Assembly: GCF_000315625.1 (NCBI RefSeq)
Contig: NW_005434634.1
Location: 272,531 to 336,530, forward strand
Length of the DNA stretch: 64,000 nt
Direction: 5' to 3'
Origin: Guillardia theta CCMP2712
Lineage: Eukaryota > Protista > Cryptophyta
The notes beneath the pieces are model-generated. The model saw only the letters and a program-made list of their open reading frames with translations, was not told where the DNA came from and ran no database searches. The position numbers were made by a program, and so were the translations under genes. Shown in pieces: positions 3 through 16,138 of this stretch; the first letter of the stretch is position 1, and every line of letters begins with the position of its first letter.

Positions 3-3000
3 CTCATCATCGATTTTCGAAGCATGGCCGCTATTGATGGCGGATTGTGTCTGCTGGACTCTGCTTCAGTATGCACTGGATTGCAGCCTGAGCTGTCGAT
101 TATCTATTCAGCAATCAACAATGGTTCGGTCAGTCAAGTGAAATCAATTTGCAAAAATCAATGCACAGGAGCTGTTTACTCCCTGTCAAGGGAACAAACA
201 GGTCTTAGTAGGTCATCCACGACCAAAACAAAAATAATACCTTACAATGATCGCCCATCAATAGGTGGTGCCGGATTTGCAATGAGATTTGACGGAATTG
301 ATGATTTCATCGCGGGTTCTGTCGATGTCTTTCCTTCCGAGGAATTCACGATCATGTTGTGGGTGAGGTGCTCAGACAATGAAAGGCTGGGGCAGGGGAT
401 TATGCAATATATCTCTGAAAGCTATGGATTAGAGTTTGCACTGTTCACTCCAGAAAATCTTGAATTCACATTGCAAGGATCTTCGTCGGGTCCGACTGGA
501 ATTAATGTGAACGATCTCCAGTGGCATCACATTGCTGTGACTTGGGTGCAAAACCAAACTTTTCTATCTGATCACACTTTGCATCAAGCCCAATATGCCA
601 AGCTCTTCATAGATTGTTTTATGTTGTTAGATCGTGCAAATCCGAGGCAATCACAATCGACGTATCCAGGTGGCAATGCAGAGATTCTCTGCAGTCAGGC
701 TGTAAACGAAGAAGGCTGGGCATGGAGTGGAAAACTTGATCTGCAATCGAAGATTGGTAAGACGGGAGAATTTTCTGTTGGACAACGGCTTGCCTGCAAT
801 TCTTCAACAAAGGACATCAGAAACAGGTACGAACGATCCATCGGATTGAACCAGAACTCGACCTTCTGCAGAAGTATAGTGAATGATACATGTGACCCTG
901 CATTCAATAGTACCCCAAGTGTGTACATTCCTGGCATTTACGTTCCAGACCCGAGTTGTAGAAAGACAGCTTCAGGAATATATATGAAAGTTCAACAGCA
1001 AATCAATTGCACAAATACGACGGACCCTTATGCAACACGAACGTATGGTGCTGTTCAACAGATAATTGCTGCAAACAGAATGTTTTCAAACGATAACATG
1101 TTAAACACTGGAAATGTTGCTACAGAGTATAGCATACCTGAAATTTCGCGTGCTGAGCAACAGATCAGGATTCAATCCTTCTGCATATCAGGATGTTTTG
1201 ACTCAAGCAATGCGTTTCTAGGACTGATTGACGATGTTCGAATATACAACTTTTCCATGACGAGCAGACAGATTTCTTTTCGAAACCAGTATTCTGCTCG
1301 TGATGGGGTAAACTGCGAGAATGTGCAAGTGCCACAAGTAGGAAAGTCCGCATTCCAAGGTTGTAGTCACATGATAGACACTTCTTACAAGTATGGTCTG
1401 GTTCTGTACTGGCCATTCGATGATTCTTTTTCACTGTACGGGACGTCTTCCACTTCTCAGAATGGTCTAGCTTCACCCATCAACAACCTTGAGTCATATG
1501 ATGTCGCTCAAGTATCCTACAACAAAATTGGAAACTTTGCTAGTGGATCAAAGTACGCTTTGAACATGGGAATGGGTTTCAACAGTACAGCACCAATGAG
1601 GGTGCCTTCCAGTGCACCGGTCTATGGGTCGAAGCTGGACTTCTTGTATTATGCGTCTGGGACTACTCAACTTGTCGAATTGAAGATCAAAGACGTGGAC
1701 ACTTGTGTGAATACGTTCGATTTCCTCAACACAGGCTCTGATACCTACCCGACATACACTTGTACGACTGTTACCGAGTGTTCTGACAGCCCTTGTGTGA
1801 ACTTCAGGATCCTTTTGTATTCTTCCAATTTAGCAGGTCTGTGTAGGCTTACGTGCTTCGGAATCGTGACGTATCCGCGAGTCAAGAGTGAATGTGTTTA
1901 CAACTTGCCATCCACCATCTTTCCAACTCAGCCTGTTTATATTTGCTCCCCTTTTCCAAATTGCCAAGGAGAAAAATGTTTTGTGGATTCCAAAATCACG
2001 ATATCCTACTCCAACCCAACTGTGAACAAGTGAGTTGTATCGATTGCTGTGAATCTGATTAATGAAGTGTTGCAGCTTTTACGTCTACACTGGCAGTTGG
2101 GTGGACCAAGGAGATCTAAGGCTAATCGGGCAACAATCTCAGTGCCTGTGCATCTCTCAACCTTGCACGGCCTCGAGCTTCGAGCTGTCTGCCCTTGCAC
2201 GAGCCAGCTCTCCTGGACGATCAGATAGTTACATCGGCTACTCTGTCAAGCTGCAATACGGTGACAAGATAGAGTATAGAAACATTGTCTGCCAAGGAGC
2301 GCAAGAATGTTCTTCAACAACTGCGTTCGCTCCCTCGGGAAGAATTATCACTGTAGACAACCCATTCTCATTTGTTCCAAACTCGCAGACAAATTATTGG
2401 ATATTCAAAGGAAACTACACTGTGAAATGGTACTTGTACTACACAAGCGAGATTATTGGAGGCTCAGATACGACTGCAGACGCCATTACTTACGAAGTTA
2501 CGGATACTCCAGGTGAAGCTGGAACTGTTTTCAGCAGCATACAACCAATCAGCTCGTATCAGACTCTGCAGATGCTCCCCGACGTGTCTACAGACACCAG
2601 CTATCTTGCTGCTTGGAATCAACCACAGATGGAAGGAAAGATTGTTATTGCTCCTTCGACAGTTCCAATTCCCATGTCATACAACTTGACTTTGTCTCCA
2701 AATCTCGTATCTGTCATCTTTCTCGATATAATTTTAGACGATGACTCATTCACAAACACCTTCAATGTCACAGTGAATGGACCACAGCAGATGGATTTGC
2801 TGGAAACAGGCAACTTCCAGCAGTCGGGGAATCAGAGCGGAGCATTGTACCAAACGATTGAAGTTTCTTGTGGCCTCGTGTCATCTGCCTCAACATGCTC
2901 CATACTATCGAAACAGCAACTCTTGAGAAGTAGCGGGTACGGTGTTGAAAACGCATCCACAAATACGACCTTTTGTGACGACAAAACATACGTTCGATCT

Positions 3001-6000
3001 ACCAGCCTCATGAACGAGTTGATGAACAGTCACCCCGTGTTCAGATATGGATTGATATCAAAACTTTGTACATACAATGTGAATAACACCGAGATTTACA
3101 ATGTCACAGGTTACAACTACACTTGTTTACCGCCCTGCTCCCCCACGCTATATACGTATCAGATTTTGGCTCAAGGATGTATACGAAATTGCACTAATCC
3201 AGGGCTGATTTGTCACAACACATACGGGCTTTACCCAAACGAGTATGCCTGCTTCGGTGGAATATACAACGGTCAACCTTGTCTGGGACCGAACGATGCT
3301 GCCTCTTGTTTTTCTCCGTTAAGTCCTACAGCATCATGTCAGTTGAGAGACCTTCAGCCTGGCATTAGTGGACCAGACTTGAAAAACAGTCTCGACAAGT
3401 CCGACCCATCCTTGATCGTCCATGCGGTATACAATGGCGATTTGCACTTCTTGGACTGGCTCCATCGAGGAGTTCAGGCAGTGTGGAACGAAGTTGCAAC
3501 AGATGTGGCTGCGGGGTTGGGGTATCAGCTGATCTTGGAGTACCTGATCCGCAATGGATGTCCCTGGCGAGATTCAGCGATTGAAAACGCAAAGTTACGA
3601 GGGCATGCAACGATAGCCCAATACCTTACAGCCTTGAAACCTCCAACAGGCTCGCCGAACTACGAGTGTGGGTGCGCCGGGTTCTCCTTGTTCTCCGTCA
3701 CCGTTGGGATCTCGAGGTGCATCCCGTTCTCGAGTGGCTTCGAGTGTGTGCAGAAGTGCGGAACCTCCCTCGCAGACGACCCCTCCTGCATCGAAGGGAA
3801 GAGCAACTACCTCAACGACTACCAAGACTCCTCCCTCAGTTCTCAATCCTCCCTCTTCCAACTCCTCGTCGTCACGACACCTCCAGCTCTTGCAAGATGC
3901 TCGACCGGGAGCTCACGAGCATTGATCCGAGGGCCTATGAGCGTGTTTCTTTCCAACGAAACGAGCTTTCGGGAGCGATCTTGGAGTGGCTCGCGAGAAG
4001 GGTTCTCTGATCAAGTCGTGACTTGTCATGGTCAAGAAGCTGTTGCACGAGGTCAAGCTCCAAAGCTCTTCTGCTCGACCCCAGGGCCACTCATTACCAC
4101 CGGAATCACCTTCGACTTTCTCAATTACCATCTCTCCGATAAATATTTCCGTGTTATCTATATTCCTGCCCAAGGTGTAACAGGTCGAGTAGCCCAATTT
4201 AATTTTACGACATCAAGAATAGCTCAATATCCTCAGCAGGATTATCTTGCTTGCGCTTCTTTCAGCACCTCGCCATGTTCAAACCAGATACCTATTGCAG
4301 CTCGGTTTGGATTTGTCAACATTACAATTGAAGGAACAGACTCAAATCCAACTCCAGAGAAACCAAGCTCCAGCTACAAACTGCTGGAGGATCAAATCAC
4401 CTTCATGAAGCTTCGGCTGCTTAATTACCCCACATTTCCTAACAAAGTATCAGGTTACATCAAAGATTTTCCCAAGTACGGTACACTCTATCAAGTGAGG
4501 CATGTCAGCAAGCAGCTGAATCTTACCGTAGAACCATTCTTCAACACCTCTGCATCTTTTCTGAGCCCAGACAAGTGCGTCACCACATCAATGGATTGCG
4601 AGTCAGGAAATTGTGATCACCCTCTGCACGATTGCTATTACGTCAAAGAGACCTTCATCCTGGGAGAACCAATACCATATGAAGATGAAACTATAGAACA
4701 GGCACCGAAGTCAATTCTGAATTCTACTGCCCACATCGAGAATCTGTTTGATGCTTCTCAAGGCTCTAATTGTTTCCTTACAGACAGATACGGAAATTCC
4801 TTTGTTAACATGTGGGCAGGAGAGATGAGTTGTGACCTCATTTCTCAAGATATCGTTGGAAGCTACTCCTTTCCGTCGCATTGTCAAAGATGCATGAAGG
4901 TCGATCGCTCTGAATTTCCTATCCCCAATGGCTCATGGACAGGCAACCTCCATTACCGAAACATCTTCGTTTCAAGGTACAAGTCTAACTACGCCATACA
5001 AGCTCCCAACGATCCTGATCAAGGCGGACGATGCAGCGTCAAAGAGTTGTGCAGATTGGGCAGCAACACGGCGTCGAAGAGTACTTGTGTGCCTTGGGAG
5101 CTGCTCGGACCTGACGGCAGGCCGACCGCGAACGGCAGGCCGCCGGTGGTGGACGGAAGTGCCTTCAGCTGGAGTGACCTGAACCCTCAAGCCCAGGGCC
5201 TGCCATGTCAAGGGGTCAATGACCAGCAGGTCTGCTCAAGGAACGTGTCCTACCTGTGGCCTCCCGAGTTTGACCCATACCAGTCAACCGTGCCGACTGA
5301 AGTCAATCTTACCGAGTATGGCGACCCAGAGGATCCCAACGACTTCTACTCCATCTGCGGTCAACGTGGAATCAATCAAGTGATGGCGGAATATTCTACT
5401 CCAGTTTACATGACAGGGTTTGATATACATCATGAGTTGGCGGACAATGTCTTCTTTCGGGTTTTGGCGTACACTGAAGAGTTCGTAACACAAGATGAGT
5501 ACGTGTTTGAGAGTTTTGTGAACAAGTCAACATACACTGTGAACTCACAAACAGTATTTCACTTTGCATCCCATGATACCAGGATGGTCAGAAACAGAAC
5601 TTTCTCTGCTTGCAGTGGTCTTGAGTGGAGAGAAGTGTGGAGAGGGTATGCCAGCGAGGGCAGGCTGGCGGATTCATTCTATGAGTCCATCATGCAAGGG
5701 AGATCTCCTGAGTTCTCCCATCTGAGGATAAGAATTAACCCAACAAACTTCTCGACAAAGAAATTACTCATTCAAAGTTGTGGGTTGATGTACGAAGGCC
5801 CGGGCAACGAGTTCGGGGGTAACGTGCTAGAAGGCTTGCAAACCCTCGTCCTTGTCGGGACTGTTGGGAACTGGCCTAGAGGATGGATTTCGAACCCTGA
5901 GATCAGACTTGCCTATGTGCCCTTCCCAAACTTCAATGGATTGGATTCGTTTTCTTTCTATGCAAGGAACTTCAGCTGCCAAGCTTGTCAGTACTCGGAG

Positions 6001-9000
6001 CCAGACGTTGAGGTCATCGATCTCCAGGTAGCCAACGTCAATGATGTGCCCGAAGCCATCTGGAAGGAGCTGACGAGCAGTCAGGGGGTCAGTGTGGACT
6101 TCGAGCTGCAAGGCGTTGACGCCTCCCCGGATGGACTTGACGGGTGGGTTCAAGGTGGCGACCTGGCTGAGGGAGCAGGCCAGGGCTCCGTTGCAGGCGT
6201 CGGGCCCTTTGGCCCTGTAGGGTTCAACAGTCGGAGCAGCCCCGATCATGAGCCAGACAGTCAGCTGTCGAGCGAGATCCTCTCCTACCCGCAGCTGGGA
6301 ACGCTGCAGTCACTGGGCCAGAACTTGTACAGGTACACACCCCCAGCAGGAGGGGGAGGAAATCCCTTGGCCGTGGTCACATTTGTGATGAGGGATAGTC
6401 AAGGCAATACATCAAGTCCTGGTAGGATCTACTTGAACTACAAGTGCCAGCCCGGGTACAGGATCGATCAAACCTCCAAGACTTGCATCCCCTGTGCTCC
6501 AGGATATTTCAAGGCGCAAGAGGACAGCAGGACTGCCTGTTTGGCGTGCCAGGCTGGCACGTACTCTCTCTACGAGGGTTCTACCGCATGCCTCGCTTGC
6601 CCCCCGGGGAAGTTCACAAGTCAAGGAGCTTCCAACTTTTGTACCTCCTGTGCGCGGGGAACGTTTGCGCCAACAGCAGAATCAAAGGCGTGTCAGGCAT
6701 GTGCTGCAGGAACCTACGCGCCGAGAGCCGGAGCATCATCCTGCTACCAGTGCGGTCAACTGTCGTATGCTCCTCTGCCGGGCATGTTCAGGTGTTACGA
6801 TTGTCCGAGGCTGTCAAGGTCGGCGATCCCAGCAAACACCAACGTGTCCAACTGTCAATGTGTCTACCAATCCTATCGCAACGCCATCTTCGACAACCGT
6901 TCCATCCAGCTGTGGTCGCCGACGGGGGTAGGGGTCCCCAATGAATCCTTCATAGCACCCAGCGTGCTGGCCATCGAGAGCCCATGGCCCGTGCAGCTCA
7001 ACCTCTTCGGGTCTAACTGCTCTTCCTGCCCGGACGGCTCGTTCTGCCATGGACTCAACTTGTACCCCGTCACAAGGATAGCATACTGGACTGACTGGTC
7101 CAGCCCCGACAAGGTGTTTTGGCCAGACCATCTCACACCGCAGTTCTACAAGTGCAACTACAAGAACGTCAGGGAAGTTTGCCTCGGGTATCCCTTGCTG
7201 GATCTCCAAGAGCAGCTTCATATCTGTCATTTCAGAAAGAACTATGCTTTCTGCCCCAACTGGCCGAACCTGACCAATGTCTCCTTCACACACAAGGATC
7301 CTGCAAGGTGCAAGGCTGGCTATGACGGGGTGATCTGCAGCCAGTGCCTTGCTTACCAACTGCAGCAATGCGTGCCCAGAGGCTCCGACCCAGCGGACGG
7401 ATGGTTTTCTTGGAAGCGATTCACCCAGTACAGGGGGCAGCTCGCGCAAAGGAACGTGGACATTGTAGACTGTTACAGCCTGGGGGAGTGTAGGAGCAAC
7501 ACTGATGCGGCAAACTGCTCAGAGGCTCAACAGCGCTGCCTCTCCAACGGAGATGTCTGCACGTGGCAGACTGGACACTACTACCGATCTTTTGACAACT
7601 TCTGCGAGAAATGTCCAGTGGATGTCAAGGAAGGGTTCTTGGTCTACTTGATCTGGTTTGCAAGCTACGCGTTTGTGGTGCTTGTGATTATCTGGATCTA
7701 CCTCATCGACTTGAACTCCTACTTCATCATGTTGACTTTCTGGCAGACTGCTGCTCTGCTCGTCGAGTTCCGCATTGCCTGGCCTCAACAAGTTCTTTCC
7801 CTGCTCAGCTTGTACTCCATCTCAAACCTCAACATCATGGCCGTCCCTTGGATGTGCTTCTTCAACTGGCAGCCCAACTTTCTTCAGAGGTGGATCCTGA
7901 CAAACCTGGTTCTCTTCGGCGTCGTGTCCATGCGTGTCTTGTTGTGGATCTTGCCATTCCTGATCTTGCCTCCAAAGATGAAAACAGTGTTCGATTGCTT
8001 GGTCAGAGTCTTCACACGAAAATCCAATAGGAGGAACTACGAGGACCATGCAACTCAGAAGAAAGACGGGGAAGGAGAAGGACAAGGAGAAGGAGAGGGA
8101 GAGGAGGGCGATGTAGAAATGGAGCAGGCGGAAGGTGGGGCCGAGGATGGTGAAGATGGGCAGACGGCGACTCGGAAAGAAGCGTTTCTGATCAGCAGGT
8201 CAGAGGACCAGGACAGCCAGCATGTTCCAGATGAGATCACTCCGATCGAAGCGTTCGATGAATCGTCAGCTGATTGGGTTCAGACCCCATCGAGAAAGAA
8301 TCGCCGGAAGGAAGGATGGACTGAGTACAGTGTGCATAATGTTTACCAGACGCATATCCCAAAGATGATCAGAAAGCAAGAGAAACATCCCAACTCATGG
8401 ATCGACTTCTCGGTTCCATCGACAGCAGTAGATTGGAGGATGAGGAAGAAATACTTTGACATGGCATGGAGGGAGGCTGTGGCAGTCTTGAATCTGCTGT
8501 ACATCATGGGATCTGTGAAGACGCTAGAGGTAAAGTACTACTTGTTTGCGCGCTTCTGATGTGATGCCAGGCTTTCAAATGGACTTACTGGACATCCAAG
8601 ATTGCTCTTCTAGATGCAGATCCCAGTGTGCAACCGTTTGATACACAACACACGGCAGTGTTCTCCCTAGCTCTCATCGTACTTCCCATCACGGTTTTCG
8701 GACCCGTCATCAACTTTGTTCTCCTGTACATCGGACATCGGCTGAGAATGTTGGATGACCCGAGCTTCCGCATTAGGTTCGGGTTCCTGCTGGATCCGTT
8801 TGAGAGGAGATTTTGGTACTGGAACTTGGTAGTGTCCCTCCGAAAGATGATCTTCGTCTTGTCGCTTGTGTTTTTACAGCACAATCTCTTCCTTCAGAAG
8901 TTTTTTCCTCTCCTTGCAGTTTGCATCAACTTCATCTTAAACATCGTTTTCAGACCCTACAATCTGGAAAGGAACAACCTGCTGGAAAATTTCCTGCTCC

Positions 9001-9994
9001 TGATCTTGATGCTGCTGCTCCTACTCGGCATGATCAGCCCGATAGACATCGCGCTGTATCATGATACCAATGGCAGGAATGATCCTGGTCCATATGAAAC
9101 AAAGATCATTTTGGTCACCATTGCAGCTCAGTTTCTCGTTCAAGTCGTTTCTATCAGATGTATCATATCTGAGGTCGTGGAGGCGCAACTGCGAATGCCG
9201 CTGTGGGCTAGAGCTCCCCTGATGATTATCCTTGCAGCGCTCTCATCCCTGAAAGGACTAGTCAGTATGACAAAGATCATGTCAGCATACATCTTGAAAC
9301 CAACGTCAGACCCCGAGGAAGTGAAGGATTCCAAACCTGCCAAGTTACACTACAAGGCAAGTGACGAGGGCCAGGTGATCACTGGTGATCACTACGCCGA
9401 CATCTGGTGGCAGAAGTTGTTCAAGATGCGCAAGACAAAGGACGCGCTGAGCAACGACGCCTTCCGTGTCAAGAAGTTAAAGGAGGTGCATTGGCTTCAG
9501 AACAGATTCACCATTCGCAAGCGAGCCTTCCACCTGGAGAGAAGGATGGAGCAAATATATCAGATCGACAGCAAGTCCATGCAGATCCTGCGGTTGGAAC
9601 GCGAGCTCTCAGAAGCCCTCGATGCAGCCATCGCTTACGCGCGTCGAGAGGAGGGCGAGTATGCTGATCAGATGTACGACCTGGAGACGGAGCATGAAAT
9701 TCTTTGCAAAGATTACGAGGAGGCTAAGAGGAAGTATGACGAAGAAGCTGAGAGACTGAGCGAGATCGAAGATGAAACCAACTTCTACCAAGCTCAGTTG
9801 GATGCTAACATAAGGAAGGTTGGTCAAAGTGAGGAGTGGAAGGGGAAGTTTCTTAGTGAAAAGGTGAGTCTCGATCCCTGGCCTCTCACTCTCTTACACT
9901 CGCACAGGCAAAGCGTGAGAGACTGGAGCAAGAGATTGTTGATTTACAAGCTCAAATCAATCAGATTAATCTGGCAGGCCCCAAGGAAGACTGA
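3..9994 (+). CDS. Giant multi-pass membrane receptor-like protein (LamG/pentraxin-like, ankyrin-like insert, cadherin/Big_9-like, GCC2_GCC3 Cys repeats, TRP-C-like multi-TM domain, coiled-coil tail); probably 5'-partial
   Basis: ORFs 24-2033, 2062-8559 and 8628-10052 join in frame through GT-AG introns 2030-2075, 8530-8570 and 9864-9907; stop TGA 9992-9994; frame open to the window start. Motifs: FDGIDD...WHHIAVTW...GLIDDVRIYN (LamG); YVPFPNFNGLDSFSF...VANVNDVP (cadherin-like); repeated CxxCxAGTY; RFGFLLDPFERRFWYWNLVVSLRK...RPY..N.LE TM block. Confidence 0.85.
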
Positions 9995-10006
9995 CTTGCT
10001 CGACCT

Positions 10007-13000
10007 TCAGCGCTGCGGGTCGACGGTCGTCTGCATGAGGCCAACCACATGAGCGAGCACACCTGACAGGATGTCAACACAAGCAGCAGCAACCCACTGC
10101 CATCCTTACTGGTTGCCAGGGCTCCCGGCGTTCTCTTGTTGGCGCTGCTGCGAGTAATGCGCTTAGCGCCCATTGTGAAGGGCGTGCGATGCAGGTGGTA
10201 TCCTCCCTCGAGCATCGAGATGATTCTCCCCTGCGTTGCAACTTGTCACGGGCGATGGCGAGGGGAAGGATACAAGGTACCTCACTGTACCGATCTGCTA
10301 TCTCGCCAACCCGAAGCGTGAACCACTTGAAGTCTTCTTCTGTCAGCTGCAGCCCTCCGTCGTTACCCAGCACGTCCTCAGCATGCCCGTCAAAGCCCGA
10401 GGAGAGGAAGATGAGGTTGGGTCGGAACGCGGCGAGGTGGGGGAGCATCTGGTTAGCTGCAATCTCTCGGAATCGATTTGATTCGGTTCCCCGGGGGAGA
10501 GGGATCGACAAGATGTTCGGGTTGCCGTCCACCACCCCTACTTGTCGGCTGTCAGGGTAGAACCCGTCGTCCTGCAAGTGGATGGAGGCAAAGAACACCT
10601 AGCGGGCAGTCAGAGGGAGGGGTCGGGCCAGTCAAACTGCTCACGTTCTCGGGGTCCGTCTCGTCGAGCCAGGGCTTGTAAGATAGAGTGCTGAACTGCA
10701 CGCCGAACCTTAAAGGAGGAACATCAGACTGCAGACTCTTCAGTCACACGTTTACCCGGCGTTACGCAGCCGATAGCGAGGCCGAAGGTTCATGACGCAG
10801 GCAGCCGTCCCGTCGCCATAATGAGCATCGAAGTCTATGATGGCAATTCGCTGTAGAATCCCCTTGTAATTGTACCTGTGAGATAAAGAGTGACTGACAG
10901 TGACAGCCTTGCTTCACGGCGCCAACCTCGCATACGCTGCTGCGATCGCAACCGAGTTGAGCAGGCAAAACCCCTGGGAGGGAGACAAGCGCCCTGCATC
11001 ATCTGCCACCTGACCCGACGGTCCAGCATGGTGCCCAGGAGGACGGCAGGGCACAAACACCCTCTTTGGCCCTCCTATCTGCATCACCCGATCTACAGCA
11101 TAGCAACCTGCTCCTGCACAGACGGCGGCAGCATGGAAGGACGAGCTGCAGATGTTCGTCTCCTGTACTTCATGGTCAACCACTCCAAGGCCGAGAGATA
11201 AGTCACCCCGTCTCCGAGCTCAGCAACCATCCCCGAAGTCAACGTAGAGCACTTTCCCTGTAGCTCGCACACATACTCCCAGCTGCGCGAGGTCATCAAA
11301 TGTTGAGGATGAGGAAGAGAAGAGGAGAGAGCGGAGGAGAGAGGAAGAAGAAGAGAAGGAAAGAGGGCGAAGAGGAGAAGGGGAAGGAGTAGCAAGACTT
11401 TACTCGTGTACACGCAGGATGTCTGCCATCGGCGCTTCCAAGTTCCATTGCTCCCACAGGAGATGATCGCGCAGCGGATGCTGAGACGAATTTGAGTCTC
11501 TTCTCTTCACTCTTGTCCCATGCCCTCAAAGCTCACCTGTGAGAGGACTCCTCCTTCCCCGATGAGCACGTCCATCCTCTCCTCGGCCTCCTGGTGATCT
11601 TTCTTGACGCGATGCATCTGAAACGCCCCGCTGCTCGCAGAGGTCAAGGTCAAGCTCCCATCCTCCTCCTCCTCCTCATTCTCTTCCTCGTCCTCGTCCT
11701 CCTCCCTCACCTGTAGACAATCAGGACCTGTGGCTGGTAGCTGCTGTCTTGTGGATGCTTCTCCGTAGTCATAAGAATCTCCTTCTCGTCCAAGTGCTTG
11801 CTATGAGGGAGGCTCGACGATAAGTGGCCGATGGCTTTGGTCACCACGTTCAGCCCCTGGGTGACATGGTCTAGTTTCCAGGACATGACCTGCAGGGCCT
11901 CCTGATCCACCAGCTGGGAGTTGGGGCCCTTGGGAGGAGGATAAACACTTTCTCGTTGAAGCTCCTGCTGCTGTAGGTAGGCAGAGCTCCTGCTTCTGAG
12001 CATCGCCACGTCTTCCCCTGGTCTGATCTGCTCCCCTCGTGCAAACGAGTACTCTTTCGGAGGGAGGCTGGGATGCATGCTGCTGAACGTGTAGCGCTTG
12101 TCCGGGTCCGAGGCCTCATACCTCCTCCCAACCACGTCGCTCCCCTGCCTGTAGCTCTCCTCCTGCAGATGGATGTCTGCTCGCCTTGCGAGGGGATCGT
12201 CGATTCCAGCAGGAGGGGCATGAAAAGTCTTGGGGGGAGAAGCCATGCTATCGGCACCATAGATCCGCTTGCTGTACTGCGGTGATATGTCAGTGTACGG
12301 CACACTGGCCATCTTGGCAGCAGCTGCTGATTGAATGCTGGCGGCAAGCTGGGGATCATGGAGCTTCATGCTCGCTTCTTGCGAGGGAGTAGCAAACTCT
12401 TGGTAACCCTCGTACACAGCGTTGGAAGGCAGCTTGCTGTCCTCCTGATATCTGCTCCTCTCCTGCTGATACCCCTTCCTGTAGGAAGGAAACGAGGTTT
12501 TCATCCTTGGGCTCGACGACTTCCCTCGTTGAAATTCTTGCTGCTGCCCATGCATGCTCGAAAGAACCTCCGCCTGCTGGCTGTTTGCTTGCGGGGCTGC
12601 TGTGCTGGGCGGTTGTTTCTGGCCAGTAGAGGATGACAGTTTCTCAACGAGCTGGAGGAGACGCTGAGCTTCCTGTGGAACCTCCCGACCTTCGCCGGTC
12701 TCCCCTGACTTTGACTGACCCGTCTGGGAGATGAAGGGCTGGATGTAGGACAGCGGATCCTGAGGAGCAAGACCGGACAAGAAGTAGTTCACCCTGCCCT
12801 TGAGCTTTTCTACAGATTCCCTGGACCCAGTGATCACAATCGACAACTTGTCATCGCCTCCATCCTCCACATTCTCAGCATCCTTGCTGCTGTTTTGTGA
12901 CTGAGGGCTCCACGAGGGGATGTAGATGTGCGATCGCAACATCTTTGCCTGTGCTTATCATCAAACGTGCATTGCGCTTGTTCGAACTTTCACCTCATGG

Positions 13001-14512
13001 CACAGCAGTCGCGCATTCTTACCGTGAGTTCCTATGACCAGACCCACCTTCGACCTGGACACAGGAACTTCAACTCGGACCTGGTCTCCTATCAACCCAG
13101 TCATCTCCAAGTAAATCACCATTGCAGGATCAGTACGGTGCGATTGGATGGCCGGGAGAGCAGGTTGAGGAGCAACGGCAGGACCGGGAGGAGGAGAGGT
13201 TGCCAGCGAGTTGTTTGACTCTGTATATACATTCAGGTCACTTGGGGGAGGAAAGAGGAACAACAACCGTCGGAACTGGACTTGTGATGAATTTCTGCTG
13301 GACTAGAACGAGCGAGGAAAGCCTCATATCCTCCCTCTGTCAAGGTGTCAAGCACCTGCCAAGTGAACTCAGGACGGGAAGTGTACTGGATAATTGACAC
13401 GAAGGGGCAGATTAGCAGGAGAAGTCTTGTAGGGGATTGCTGGGACGGTGAGAGGAGAGATTCGACACGCGAATGGAAAGGGAGAGGGAGAGAGAAGAGC
13501 GGGAGATAGGGAGAGAGGGGGAGGGGGGGAAGGGGGGGAGGAGAGAGAGAGAGAAGGGGGAGGCAAGCAAGTGAAACATGAGACCGGAGGAGCTGGGAGG
13601 GGTTGGAGAAGACATGGGATCTAGATGGGTATACATAGCTCAATGTAAGGGTCTCAGCTCCTTTCTTGGATGATGCGCTTCGTTTCATACGACTGCCATT
13701 GATCCAGACCGAGCAGCAGAATTGGATAAGTTCGTGGGGTAGTCCGACGCGAGAAACCTCAACTTTGGGCTGGATGCAAGCACGGGTAAGGAAGGAGAAA
13801 AATGGGAAATGGAGACGGGAGACGGGGAGGTACAGTAGAGACTTGCAATATGAGAGTGGAGGGATGGTTCGAAGGGAGTGAATGAGATGAACAAACTCAC
13901 ATCAGAAAGCGAGTTCGCCCTGCAGTATGACTGAATCCCTTCGAAGAGCTCCGAGGAACTTCGTGGGTTTATTGATTGCGCGCGAGGGGTACCAGTACCC
14001 GGCCCTTGAGCCCCCGTGTCGTTGGGACCCGACAAGATCTGTAGCAGACGGCTCTGATTCACCATCGTTGCATCCTGCGTTCCATTGAGTTGCTCCTCCC
14101 TCCCATCGCCGGCACTCGAGCTTTCATCTCCGTCGTCCACGTTGAGGAACAACTTTGCAGCGGGAGAAAGCTTCAGCCTGTCGTCGATCTTCTGCTCCTT
14201 GTCAGCTACAGAGGCAGTTGACCTCTCCTTCTGTCCTCCCTCTCCAGCCGGGTCGGTTGACTCTTCGCTATCCATCGAGCTCAGGTCGTCATAGAAGTCG
14301 CCTCGAGATTTGCGAGGAAGACCCCCTCCTCCCCGCATGTGCAGCAGCAGAGGGTCCCTGTACCGACCAGCGGATAGGCTCGACAGGAGCTGAGCTTCTC
14401 TGAAGCAGCATCTCCCTGCTATGCTACCTCCTCCTCCTCCTCCTCCTCCTTCCCCTGCCCCCGCCCCCGCCATTGCGAGCATTGTCGCCAGCATACATTG
14501 CGCCCATTGCAT
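10007..14512 (-). CDS. Class II histone deacetylase with N-terminal dsRNA-binding domain and KH domain, plus signal-peptide-like leader
   Basis: Spliced HDAC motifs HQEAEERM, APMADILRVH, RPPGHHA, GFCLLNSVAIAA, IIDFDAHYGDGT, FFASIH, SSGFDGH, LEGGY, LATSVLAHVVGL; stop at 10007-10009. KH: VPVSRSKVGLVIGTHGKN...IVITGSRESVEK. dsRBD: IQSYCRANSLSD|PKVEVSRVGLPHELIQFCCSVWING...SSKKGAETLTLSY|VLDTL. Junctions checked are in-frame GT-AG. Confidence 0.85.
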
Positions 14513-14619
14513 TCGGCCCCCGGAAACCCATGGGGCACAAGCTGAAAACTACCTCAACTTGTCGTATACAACTTTACTGCCCCATACCCTCCGCCTCAGT
14601 TGGCGTCAATGGCAGAAGG

Positions 14620-16138
14620 ATGAGCAGGAGAGGAAGGGCGGCAGTGCCGCTGCTGCTGCTGCTGCTCATGTGCTACTTTGTGCCATGCTCGACGAGCAAG
14701 GAGCAGGAACGAGATCAGGCGGCGCAGAGCTCCAGACTGTTGAGAGAGTCGCTGCGAGCTGAGGCAGAGGGCAGGTTGAACGATGCCATCGCCTTGGCTG
14801 CAAAGATGCCGCAAGATGTTTTCGCGGTGTTCAGACAGGGGAAACTGATGATGAAGAAAGGAGACTTCAGAGCAGCACATGCTGCGTTCTCTGCCGTAGA
14901 ACAGGTAGAGCCCTCCTTTCCTTCCTTGCTCAGCCACATCGCTTTCTTGTACTTCAAGGTACAGGAGATGAAGGCAAGCATCGCCTATTGTTTGAAAGCG
15001 CTTCAAGTTTCTCCCCTTGATCTGCGTGCAAACAGCATCTTGAAGAGGATTTTGAGAGCACCTGGTCCTTTTCCGCTCGAGGTGCAAGAGGTGCAGAGGC
15101 AGTCTCAAAACGCCATATTACAATCCCACCTCCGAGGTGGCTTCGTTCATCAGCATGAAAGAATGCAGAGTAAAGTTACAGACATCTCCTACAATGGTAA
15201 ATGAATCTATAAGAGGACACTATTGTTGCATGACGATCATGTTTGCAGGTAAACAAGTGCGGCTGGTGTCTTCTGCTAATTCTCTTTATTTCCAATGCCT
15301 CGCAAACCTCGTTGGATCCATTCAGCTCCGAGAGCCGAACTTGAACATCACTATCTACGACATGGGATTCGATGAGCTGGAGAGTATGGTTGTCAGCGAC
15401 TGGAAAAATGTTCAACTCGTTCGATTCCCCTTTGAAAGCTACCCTCCGCATGTCCGAAACCTGAGGAACTATGCTTGGAAGCCCTTGGTGTATCGTGAAG
15501 CGCTCATGAGAGATTCGATGATCCTGTATCAGGTCTGTCTTGCAGACTCTTCTCCAGCCTCGAGCTCTCTGACGAACCCTTGATAGGATGCTGGACAGGA
15601 GCTCTGGCAACCTGTCGGTCTCATCGAGGACATCATAGCCAGAGATGGTTATTTCTTCGTCATGCAGGGTGAGAAGACCTTGCCGGAAAAGATACATCCT
15701 GCGAGCATGCAGTTTCTGGGGTTCGAGGCCAACGATTTGCGTGGGAAGGATATGTGCGCTGGCGGCATTCAGGGGTACATGAACACGAGCCGTGCAGTAC
15801 AGGAGGTGCTGGGAAGCACAATCAAATGCGCCCTCGATGAAGACTGTATCGCCCCGAAGAAAGCTGATCAGTCGAACCATCGTTTTGACCAGGCCATCTT
15901 CTCCATGTTCATGTCAAGACACTTATACAGGTTGAGAAGTGTTGACTTCACTATCACCGTTGACAACCTGCCCAGGTGCCACTGCTCATGGATCTTTCGA
16001 GCGTATTTGGAAACTGCGCGATTGAAGGAAGCAGATGTATTCGATGTCCGTGACGGATTTGGACATTTCTATCCTCTTCTCTTCTCAAGGAGATGCGGGA
16101 GCAATCAAAGCTACTTCCCAATTTTCCGACACATGTAA
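14620..16138 (+). CDS. Secreted/Golgi TPR-repeat + DUF1647 (glycosyltransferase-like) protein
   Basis: Signal peptide MSRRGRAAVPLLLLLLMCYFVPCSTS; TPR-like helices; LVSSANSLYF...IYDMGF...FPFESYPPHV...YAWKP...DAG...CIAP...HRFDQA typical of DUF1647; short GT-AG introns. Confidence 0.75.

Follow-up and report, generated by a model that had tools for sequence, protein, structure and literature searches.

The 64,000-nucleotide stretch of Guillardia theta CCMP2712 DNA analysed here (the window; contig C40:272531-336530 in a genome of 87.1 Mb and 669 contigs) contains a gene on the minus strand, read from 14512 to 10007, that joins domains of RNA-binding type to a deacetylase. We consider it likely that this is one nuclear gene for a protein of about 1,137 residues, built from a leader, an acidic region, a domain of the type that binds double-stranded RNA (dsRBD), a linker, a type I KH domain, a second linker of about 330 residues and a complete class II deacetylase, with the pair of RNA-binding domains as targeting module. 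The chain of exons and its single frame, the identity and motifs of the deacetylase, the identity of the KH domain, the conservation of the layout and the different modules of a sister family are documented below and carry this reading. The gene represents a new domain architecture in a known enzyme family, and its taxonomic spread is narrow. A preliminary description of the locus had reported such a fusion, and this observation was confirmed; the function that it proposed, an RNA-reading deacetylase acting on chromatin or ribonucleoproteins (RNPs), we infer from the domains only.

The sole public annotation at the locus is XP_005831462.1 ('hypothetical protein GUITHDRAFT_55637, partial'), which covers 217 of about 1,137 residues and thereby only a piece of the deacetylase domain. 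The new gene model corrects this badly fragmented one, and its last nucleotide, the end of the stop codon at 10009-10007, coincides with the gene boundary of 10007 given in the preliminary description. All searches were run exon by exon or per open frame. The model comprises the following features.

Whole coding region: 10007..14512, minus strand, 15 exons, 14 GT-AG introns, 1137 codons, TGA at 10009-10007
Exon 1: 13901..14512, minus strand, ATG at 14512, hydrophobic leader MQWAQCMLATMLAMAGAGAG, poly-Gly, acidic/Ser-rich region, probable dsRBD helix 1
Exon 1 tail: 13951-13901, minus strand, last ~17 codons, probable helix 1 of the dsRBD (..IQSYCRANSLSD)
Exon 2: 13635..13769, minus strand, probable dsRBD strands 1-3 and start of helix 2 (GLPHE, SSKKGAE)
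Exon 3: 13268..13355, minus strand, probable end of dsRBD helix 2 (VLDTL..), then linker; junctions in RNA contigs
Exon 4: 13137..13220, minus strand, Pro/Ala-rich linker
Exon 5: 12994..13088, minus strand, KH first half with strand 1, helix 1, GxxG loop GTHG and helix 2
Exon 6: 11711..12948, minus strand, KH second half, ~330-residue linker and first deacetylase strand; RNA-spliced on both sides
Exons 7-11: 11630-11537, 11480-11404, 11282-11207, 11162-10927 and 10875-10756, minus strand, N-terminal half of the deacetylase domain
Exons 12-15: 10708-10645, 10598-10281, 10230-10110 and 10062-10007, minus strand, C-terminal half of the deacetylase domain
Introns after exons 11, 12, 13 and 14: 10755-10709, 10644-10599, 10280-10231 and 10109-10063, minus strand, 47, 46, 50 and 47 nt, predicted by homology only

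The RNA data compared with positions 9700-14700 comprised contigs from X1, X2 and X3, older runs that each come from a different study, and raw RNA reads from 2026 (X21). The X1-X3 contigs are spliced and therefore derive from RNA. They skip ten stretches, all of them GT..AG on the minus strand.

13770-13900 (131 nt), minus strand, RNA-confirmed intron, contigs X1-X3
13356-13634 (279 nt), minus strand, RNA-confirmed intron, contigs X1-X3
13221-13267, minus strand, RNA-confirmed intron, contigs X1-X3
13089-13136, minus strand, RNA-confirmed intron, contigs X1-X3
12949-12993, minus strand, RNA-confirmed intron, contigs X1-X3
11631-11710, minus strand, RNA-confirmed intron, contigs X1-X3
11481-11536, minus strand, RNA-confirmed intron, contigs X1-X3
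11283-11403, minus strand, RNA-confirmed intron, contigs X1-X3
11163-11206, minus strand, RNA-confirmed intron, contigs X1-X3
10876-10926, minus strand, RNA-confirmed intron, contigs X1-X3

The first two of these had been removed on paper in the preliminary description (as 13900-13770 and 13634 to about 13356) and are skipped exactly by the contigs; the RNA junctions reproduce its spliced dsRBD-like peptide as ...SYCRANSLSD followed by PKVEV...TLTLSY and VLDTL.... Record 1 of X1 runs from exon 3 through exon 11 with each junction spliced, record 7 of X2 runs from exon 1 through exon 4, also spliced, and the two records share exons 3 and 4 together with their junction. Within exon 1, RNA contigs span 13901-14418 and connect to exon 2, and the X2 pieces over exons 1-6 are of similar depth (10.9-12.3). 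By exon-by-exon arithmetic, the frame that starts with the ATG at 14512 crosses the ten RNA-confirmed junctions and remains open for 951 codons, no split codon forms a stop, and such a length is far beyond chance. The expectation that a single transcript carries all domains was thereby borne out for exons 1-11, which are chained in RNA and in one frame, and not for the last four introns, which are unspliced in the assemblies and are treated below. Contig continuity alone is no proof of a single gene, as these very contigs also fuse the deacetylase gene and its convergent neighbour, and one may therefore suppose that an RNA-binding gene and a deacetylase gene were merged only by contig assembly. 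This supposition is very improbable in view of ten introns on the same strand with the frame open across every junction, of a single exon in which the second half of the KH domain and the deacetylase's opening strand lie together, and of the same order of pieces in Hanusia phi and on a metagenome contig from an uncultured relative (L001).

The identity of the deacetylase domain is certain. Three separate exons exceeded the curated cut-off of PF00850 (27.9 bits), with 52.3 and 28.1 bits within exons 7-11 and 66.7 bits within exons 12-15, and a six-frame genome scan recovered the locus at C40:282796-283698. The first strand, VLIVY, lies at 11727-11713 at the end of exon 6 (..QVLIVY) and, together with exon 7 (..FQMH..., ..ERMDVL..GGVL), corresponds in alignment to the relatives' first strand and E-x-P-x-R helix. 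Exons 7-11 carry RPPGHHA, GFCLLNSVAIAAAYA and DFDAHYGDGT and tile residues 307-467 of the ankyrin-repeat relative P0006, exons 12-15 carry the KPWLD insert, SIH, SSGFDGH, LEGGY and the last helix, and the deacetylase exons tile both P0006 and a second such relative, P0008, without gaps. All catalytic motifs listed in the preliminary description (RPPGHHA, DAH, GFD and EGGY) are present, as RPPGHHA in exon 10, DFDAH in exon 11, SSGFDGH in exon 13 and LEGGY in exon 14, the last two sitting in exons with predicted splicing. The best solved relatives by sequence were HDAC6, bacterial HDAH-like enzymes, Clr3, Hda1 and HDAC4, and we assign the domain to class II because the nearest among them are HDAC6, HDAH-like enzymes, Clr3 and Hda1. 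HDAC6, Schizosaccharomyces pombe Clr3, yeast Hda1 and bacterial HDAH belong by sequence to the same fold family as the G. theta domain and have in common with it the tandem His, the Asp/His/Asp zinc ligands and the catalytic Tyr of EGGY, which is a His in class IIa. This Tyr is the state found in catalytically active members. With every catalytic residue present, the motifs predict an HDAC6/Hda1/Clr3-like, zinc-dependent lysine deacetylase. G. theta has about ten other PF00850 loci, three of which are full-length intron-free open frames (C43:376798, C109:142927 and C43:188319; 288-322 bits).

The KH identity is well supported at the sequence level because both halves match KH models and an orthologue passes the Pfam cut-off. 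Exon 5, with the GxxG loop GTHG (IGTHGK), matched KhpA-B at 19.5 bits. The second half (..LSIVITGSRESVEKLK..), with the C-terminal strand and helix characteristic of type I, opens exon 6, from 12948 to about 12770, includes an insert of ~25 residues in the variable loop, and is reflected by a KH_Vigilin match of 15 bits (model 22-38) to the first 60 residues of the exon. In Hanusia phi, P0151 matched KH_1 over model positions 42-64 with 11.8 bits; on L001 the first half reached 23.8 bits with KH_1, above the cut-off of 21.5, and the second half 15.2 bits with KH_PARP14_6 (model 30-67). From two ordered halves in three taxa we therefore attribute these exons to a KH domain of type I whose variable loop carries ~25 inserted residues, in agreement with the type I KH domain with GTHG and a long following linker that had been described before. 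The same exon 6 ties the KH domain to the deacetylase, as it joins the KH second half at its start to the first deacetylase strand at its end, and neither a stop nor a start signal has to be assumed in between; it corresponds to the 411-codon open frame (12942-11707) from which this tie had first been read, and its end aligns with the first strand of the deacetylase domain in relatives. The stretch assigned just before the KH domain in the preliminary description was in part read-through of an intron, the real exon 4 (13220-13137) being a Pro/Ala-rich linker. The linker of ~330 residues in exon 6 is Ser/Gln/Pro-rich and has the conserved motifs QDPLSYIQPF, PQEAQRLLQLVEKL and KLDHVTQGLNVVTKAIG; a metagenome scan with the linker motifs gave 281 pattern matches, 0 of them confirmed.

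For the third domain, a dsRBD is probable from alignment and motifs. An hhalign profile built from nine good G. theta dsRBDs aligned with exon 2 over columns 18-56 (87% probability, E 3.8e-6) and with the exon 1 tail (IQSYCRANSLS) over columns 5-15 (E 0.004), and the two dsRBD-like pieces of L001 fell on columns 7-31 and 31-54. Exon 2 carries two RNA-contact motifs, GLPHE in the His loop between strands 1 and 2 and SSKKGAE (KK-x-AE) at the start of helix 2, with GLPHE and SSSKRAA as their counterparts on L001. The helix 1 segment SYCRANSLSD is identical in Hanusia phi.

Several search results weigh against the overall reading at this point. Exon 2 gave 15.7 bits with Pfam dsrm (PF00035; E 0.024, model 20-56/66) against a cut-off of 23, with the domain split over three exons; phmmer with exon 2 against PDB sequences gave no match, a protein atlas search with exon 2 gave no usable match, the L001 dsRBD-like pieces had no Pfam match, and the head of exon 3 (end of helix 2), too short to score alone, did not align to the dsRBD profile. 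Likewise, exon 5 remained at 19.2 bits with Pfam KH_1 (PF00013; E 0.001, model 2-25/66) against the cut-off of 21.5, that domain also being split over exons, and the genome-wide six-frame scan picked out neither the dsRBD nor the KH domain of this gene. No full-length database protein was found, the queries of 204 and 412 residues being blind to any protein of 700-950 residues translated from a transcript that spans exons 1-11. These results leave some room for a protein in which only the KH domain and the deacetylase are real and the dsRBD-like stretch is degenerate or due to chance, without binding of double-stranded RNA (dsRNA). We nevertheless find such a protein quite unlikely, since dsrm was the sole Pfam match of exon 2, the genome's own dsRBDs align with it at 87% probability, four separate pieces, drawn from two species, align in correct order and register, and the G-x-P-H loop and KK-x-AE are kept in G. 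theta with helix 1 identical in Hanusia. The fit to the dsRBD consensus that had been proposed earlier accordingly stands in the hhalign register, the His loop and KK-x-AE, and stays under the Pfam cut-off for any single exon; the check by hidden Markov models per exon was similarly divided, with PF00850 above its cut-off and dsrm and KH_1 below theirs in G. theta.

Two further observations concern the dsRBDs. The 279-nt intron at 13356-13634, which lies in dsRBD helix 2, is itself open over 93 codons and in phase with both neighbouring exons, and an X1 contig of low depth (7) at 13326-13662 retains it; a minor isoform with a 93-residue Pro/Leu/Ser-rich insert in the dsRBD would preserve the frame. 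Elsewhere in the genome, tandem dsRBD clusters were found at C52:287376-292778, C49:448137-449129, C19:913595-913789 and C40:201259-201435, and share the signature LIN.C.R..L..P.F.T...GPDH.P.F.CTVT.G. One dsRBD-coding stretch lies 84 kb upstream of the fusion gene on the same contig and, like the C19 copy, resembles the second dsRBD piece of L001 (QFECIATIGESTFYG compared with QFSCTVTIGQQTFYG).

The domain layout recurs in Hanusia phi and in one uncultured relative. For Hanusia phi (EukProt), the unspliced open reading frames P0152 and P0151 showed 54% identity over all of exon 1 and 71% identity over all of exon 6, respectively; both bear the same contig name, with the numbers.AAC.4 and.AAC.3, and an exact look-up of P0151 in assemblies returned no record. 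The uncultured relative is represented by L001, a contig of 36.9 kb on which dsRBD-like, KH, linker-motif and deacetylase pieces follow each other along one strand with their order unchanged.

L001 10-117 and 560-700: dsRBD-like pieces
L001 2539-2625 and 3113-3205: KH halves
L001 linker motifs: QDPLAYIEP and HEAARLLELIQKL
L001 5293-8108: deacetylase exons

The L001 deacetylase exons have 47-75% identity to those of G. theta, and some intron positions are common to both and others are not. Within 150-2200 and 2680-3300, the L001 introns are crowded with microsatellites of the types (GT/CA)n, (CT)n and (GGN)n, which gene callers read as poly-Pro, poly-Ser and poly-Leu 'proteins', and a local duplication of ~100 bp repeats the stretch coding for KVGLPHERIQ (46-90 and 153-182).

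The last four introns, which a whole catalytic domain requires, are predicted by homology. In relatives, an insert ending KPWLD..D.EN stands immediately ahead of the S-x-H strand of the deacetylase domain, and with this insert as a guide, four short GT-AG introns (47, 46, 50 and 47 nt) restore a complete domain; the same family-specific insert exposed the 64-nt exon at 10708-10645 between two short introns. Exons 12-15 land on P0006 residues 481-495, 496-601, 602-612 and 626-636, and in this alignment each predicted junction unites neighbouring residues of the relative. The 50-nt intron at 10280-10231 is also used in the NCBI model XP_005831462.1, and the 47-nt intron at 10109-10063 recovers the conserved last helix and brings the stop to 10009-10007. 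Two candidates were rejected: the donor/acceptor pair 10755/10599 after exon 11, implied by the preliminary description, broke the frame, and the C-terminus of a first model, with its stop at 9961-9963, mismatched relatives.

The most serious competitor of the complete enzyme is real retention of these 3' introns. In the contigs of X1, X2 and X3, all upstream introns are removed and the stretch from after exon 11 to 9906 (9906-10873) is unspliced; translation of this form would end at the stop at 10752-10754, with half of the catalytic domain missing. The MMETSP-derived open reading frame P0002 keeps the 50-nt intron and begins downstream of the 46-nt one. A second metagenome contig, L014, shares 91-95% DNA identity with L001 (L014:1-1700, L001:4393-7375) and lacks exactly four L001 introns, all upstream of the exon 12|13 intron, which it retains; L014 is either transcript-derived or the result of recent intron loss. 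On this evidence the main product could be truncated, with the dsRBD and KH domain followed by only the N-terminal half of the deacetylase fold; it would then be a non-catalytic RNA-binding protein, or else the transcript would be kept back through regulated intron retention. We regard this as unlikely. The four introns are GT-AG and of a size usual in this gene (46-50 nt), and exons 12-15 preserve GFD with its zinc ligand, D..H..D, LEGGY and the last helix and fall on neighbouring residues in relatives. Moreover, a convergent gene supplies unspliced RNA of exactly this stretch:

8628..9994, plus strand, convergent neighbour gene outside the fusion, last intron 9864-9907, stop ends at 9994

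The neighbour's own 44-nt GT-AG intron (9864-9907) is present in the same contigs and shifts its stop from 10052 to 9994, that is, to 12 nt from the stop of the deacetylase gene. Because the two stops are 12 nt apart on opposite strands, the 3' untranslated region (UTR) of the neighbour must cross exons 12-15 in antisense, and the four 3' introns probably appear unspliced because of this overlap. The contigs over the 3' stretch are deeper (about 20) than those over exons 1-6 (5-12), and contigs retain only the commoner path. P0002, with its retained introns, agrees with this account as well. Overlap with the neighbour's 3' UTR is therefore the likeliest account of the unspliced 3' contigs, and the complete deacetylase remains our preferred model.

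The search with exon 13 was exhaustive and returned, besides G. theta itself, short cryptophyte-like fragments (46-54% identity) and then long proteins (40-44% identity). The 26 long relatives scanned were mostly ankyrin plus deacetylase proteins, with two PHD proteins, one with an ADD/PHD-like finger and some consisting of the deacetylase alone. For the 120 best relatives of P0006 with precomputed Pfam domains, which come from diatoms, Cryptosporidium and many uncultured protists, all were ankyrin plus deacetylase or deacetylase alone. Neither dsrm nor KH occurred in any of these about 140 nearest deacetylase relatives, and the literature searched held nothing relevant on a dsRBD or KH deacetylase fusion; the architecture that had seemed unfamiliar in the preliminary description was met in neither place. 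The closest catalytic domains, at 40-46% identity by exon, are those of ankyrin-repeat class II deacetylases from diatoms, apicomplexans and other protists (P0006, P0008 and P0015; P0280 of Cryptosporidium felis). They share with the G. theta protein the KPWLD..D.EN insert, the GFCLLN.VAI.A.YA motif and the terminal V.AHV..LM helix, and follow the same plan of an N-terminal targeting module, a spacer and a C-terminal deacetylase. The second His of their DxDxHH is a Tyr in G. theta and L001, and the N-terminal module, which in the relatives is ankyrin (in a few PHD/ADD) and of a protein- or chromatin-binding kind, is in G. theta a dsRBD plus KH of RNA-binding type. Since the relatives consist of a targeting module and a deacetylase, the module of the Guillardia lineage is, by the same plan, the RNA-binding one. 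This deacetylase clade then swaps its targeting module between ankyrin, PHD and dsRBD plus KH.

In RNA-guided chromatin silencing and RNP regulation, deacetylases are normally brought to RNA by separate adaptor proteins. Clr3 is brought to RNAi-dependent heterochromatin by other proteins, those of the SHREC complex, and HDAC6 contacts RNP granules via partners; unlike the G. theta protein, HDAC6, Clr3, Hda1 and HDAH have no RNA-binding domain. Fusions of a dsRBD to an enzyme are known from the kinase PKR, in which RNA binding switches the enzyme on, from the deaminase ADAR and from the plant phosphatase CPL1, and PARP14 is a modifier that bears KH domains. Like these, the G. theta protein would combine an RNA-binding domain and a protein- or RNA-modifying enzyme in one chain, with a different catalytic domain; we know of no deacetylase among the fusions of dsRBD or KH to enzymes. 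In the mechanism that we propose, the dsRBD and KH domain would take the place of the ankyrin repeats or PHD fingers of the sister family as targeting module, bind structured and single-stranded RNA, and thereby attach the deacetylase to RNPs or to RNA that is structured or nascent. The tethered enzyme would remove acetyl groups from lysines of nearby proteins, candidate substrates being histones on transcribed chromatin or RNP- and RNA-associated proteins, with its reach set by the flexible linker of ~330 residues. By analogy with PKR, RNA binding might also gate its activity. Many G. theta genes, including the fusion locus, overlap tail to tail, and such overlaps should yield dsRNA, a plausible ligand. 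If this is true, a natural single-chain fusion of two RNA-binding domains and an apparently active class II deacetylase provides a minimal and directly testable link between RNA and deacetylation. Two things limit its value at present, a narrow distribution, comprising Guillardia, Hanusia and one uncultured relative, and a function that is inferred.

One feature may point away from the host nucleus and counts against this picture. The protein begins with the leader MQWAQCMLATMLAMAGAGAG (14453-14512), followed by poly-Gly and an Arg/Ser/Gly-rich stretch (14327-14512); its mean Kyte-Doolittle hydrophobicity reaches 1.76 over 11 residues, and it is kept in Hanusia phi (MPWAQWMLVITLAMAGAG..., LLLHLRGGRGLPRKSR). 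It resembles a signal peptide with a transit-peptide-like region, with no aromatic residue right after the hydrophobic core. The hydrophobic N-terminus may therefore be a signal peptide, and the protein would possibly be directed elsewhere than to the host nucleus. Nucleomorph chromatin relies in part on factors that are imported. Marinov and Lynch (PMC4822330) note that every nucleomorph has one deacetylase gene of its own and that it is unknown which chromatin factors are brought into that compartment. The literature search returned nothing relevant on a periplastid-targeted deacetylase in Guillardia. A deacetylase gated by or tethered to RNA whose workplace or control is unusual, be it a periplastidial or nucleomorph site, control by dsRNA of its own locus or a non-protein substrate, appears improbable. 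As regards the workplace, the leader is possibly the signal-peptide part of a cryptophyte bipartite targeting signal leading to the periplastidial compartment or nucleomorph. As regards control, dsRNA could possibly form from the gene's own 3' exons and the 3' UTR of the neighbour, where the four introns stay unspliced, and could be read by the protein's own dsRBD. A non-protein, RNA-bound substrate would be a remote option.

The raw reads of X21 over 9700-14700 number only 51. They are short and mostly partial, pile up at 10535-10868 with the first mate always on the plus strand, and contain no splice joints, so that they are uninformative for splicing. The pile-up and the unspliced stretch may show where the long UTR of the neighbour has its 3' end, or else reflect regulated retention of introns. 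The neighbour gene itself, on the plus strand, encodes a protein with a membrane-like N-terminus and a coiled-coil C-terminus.

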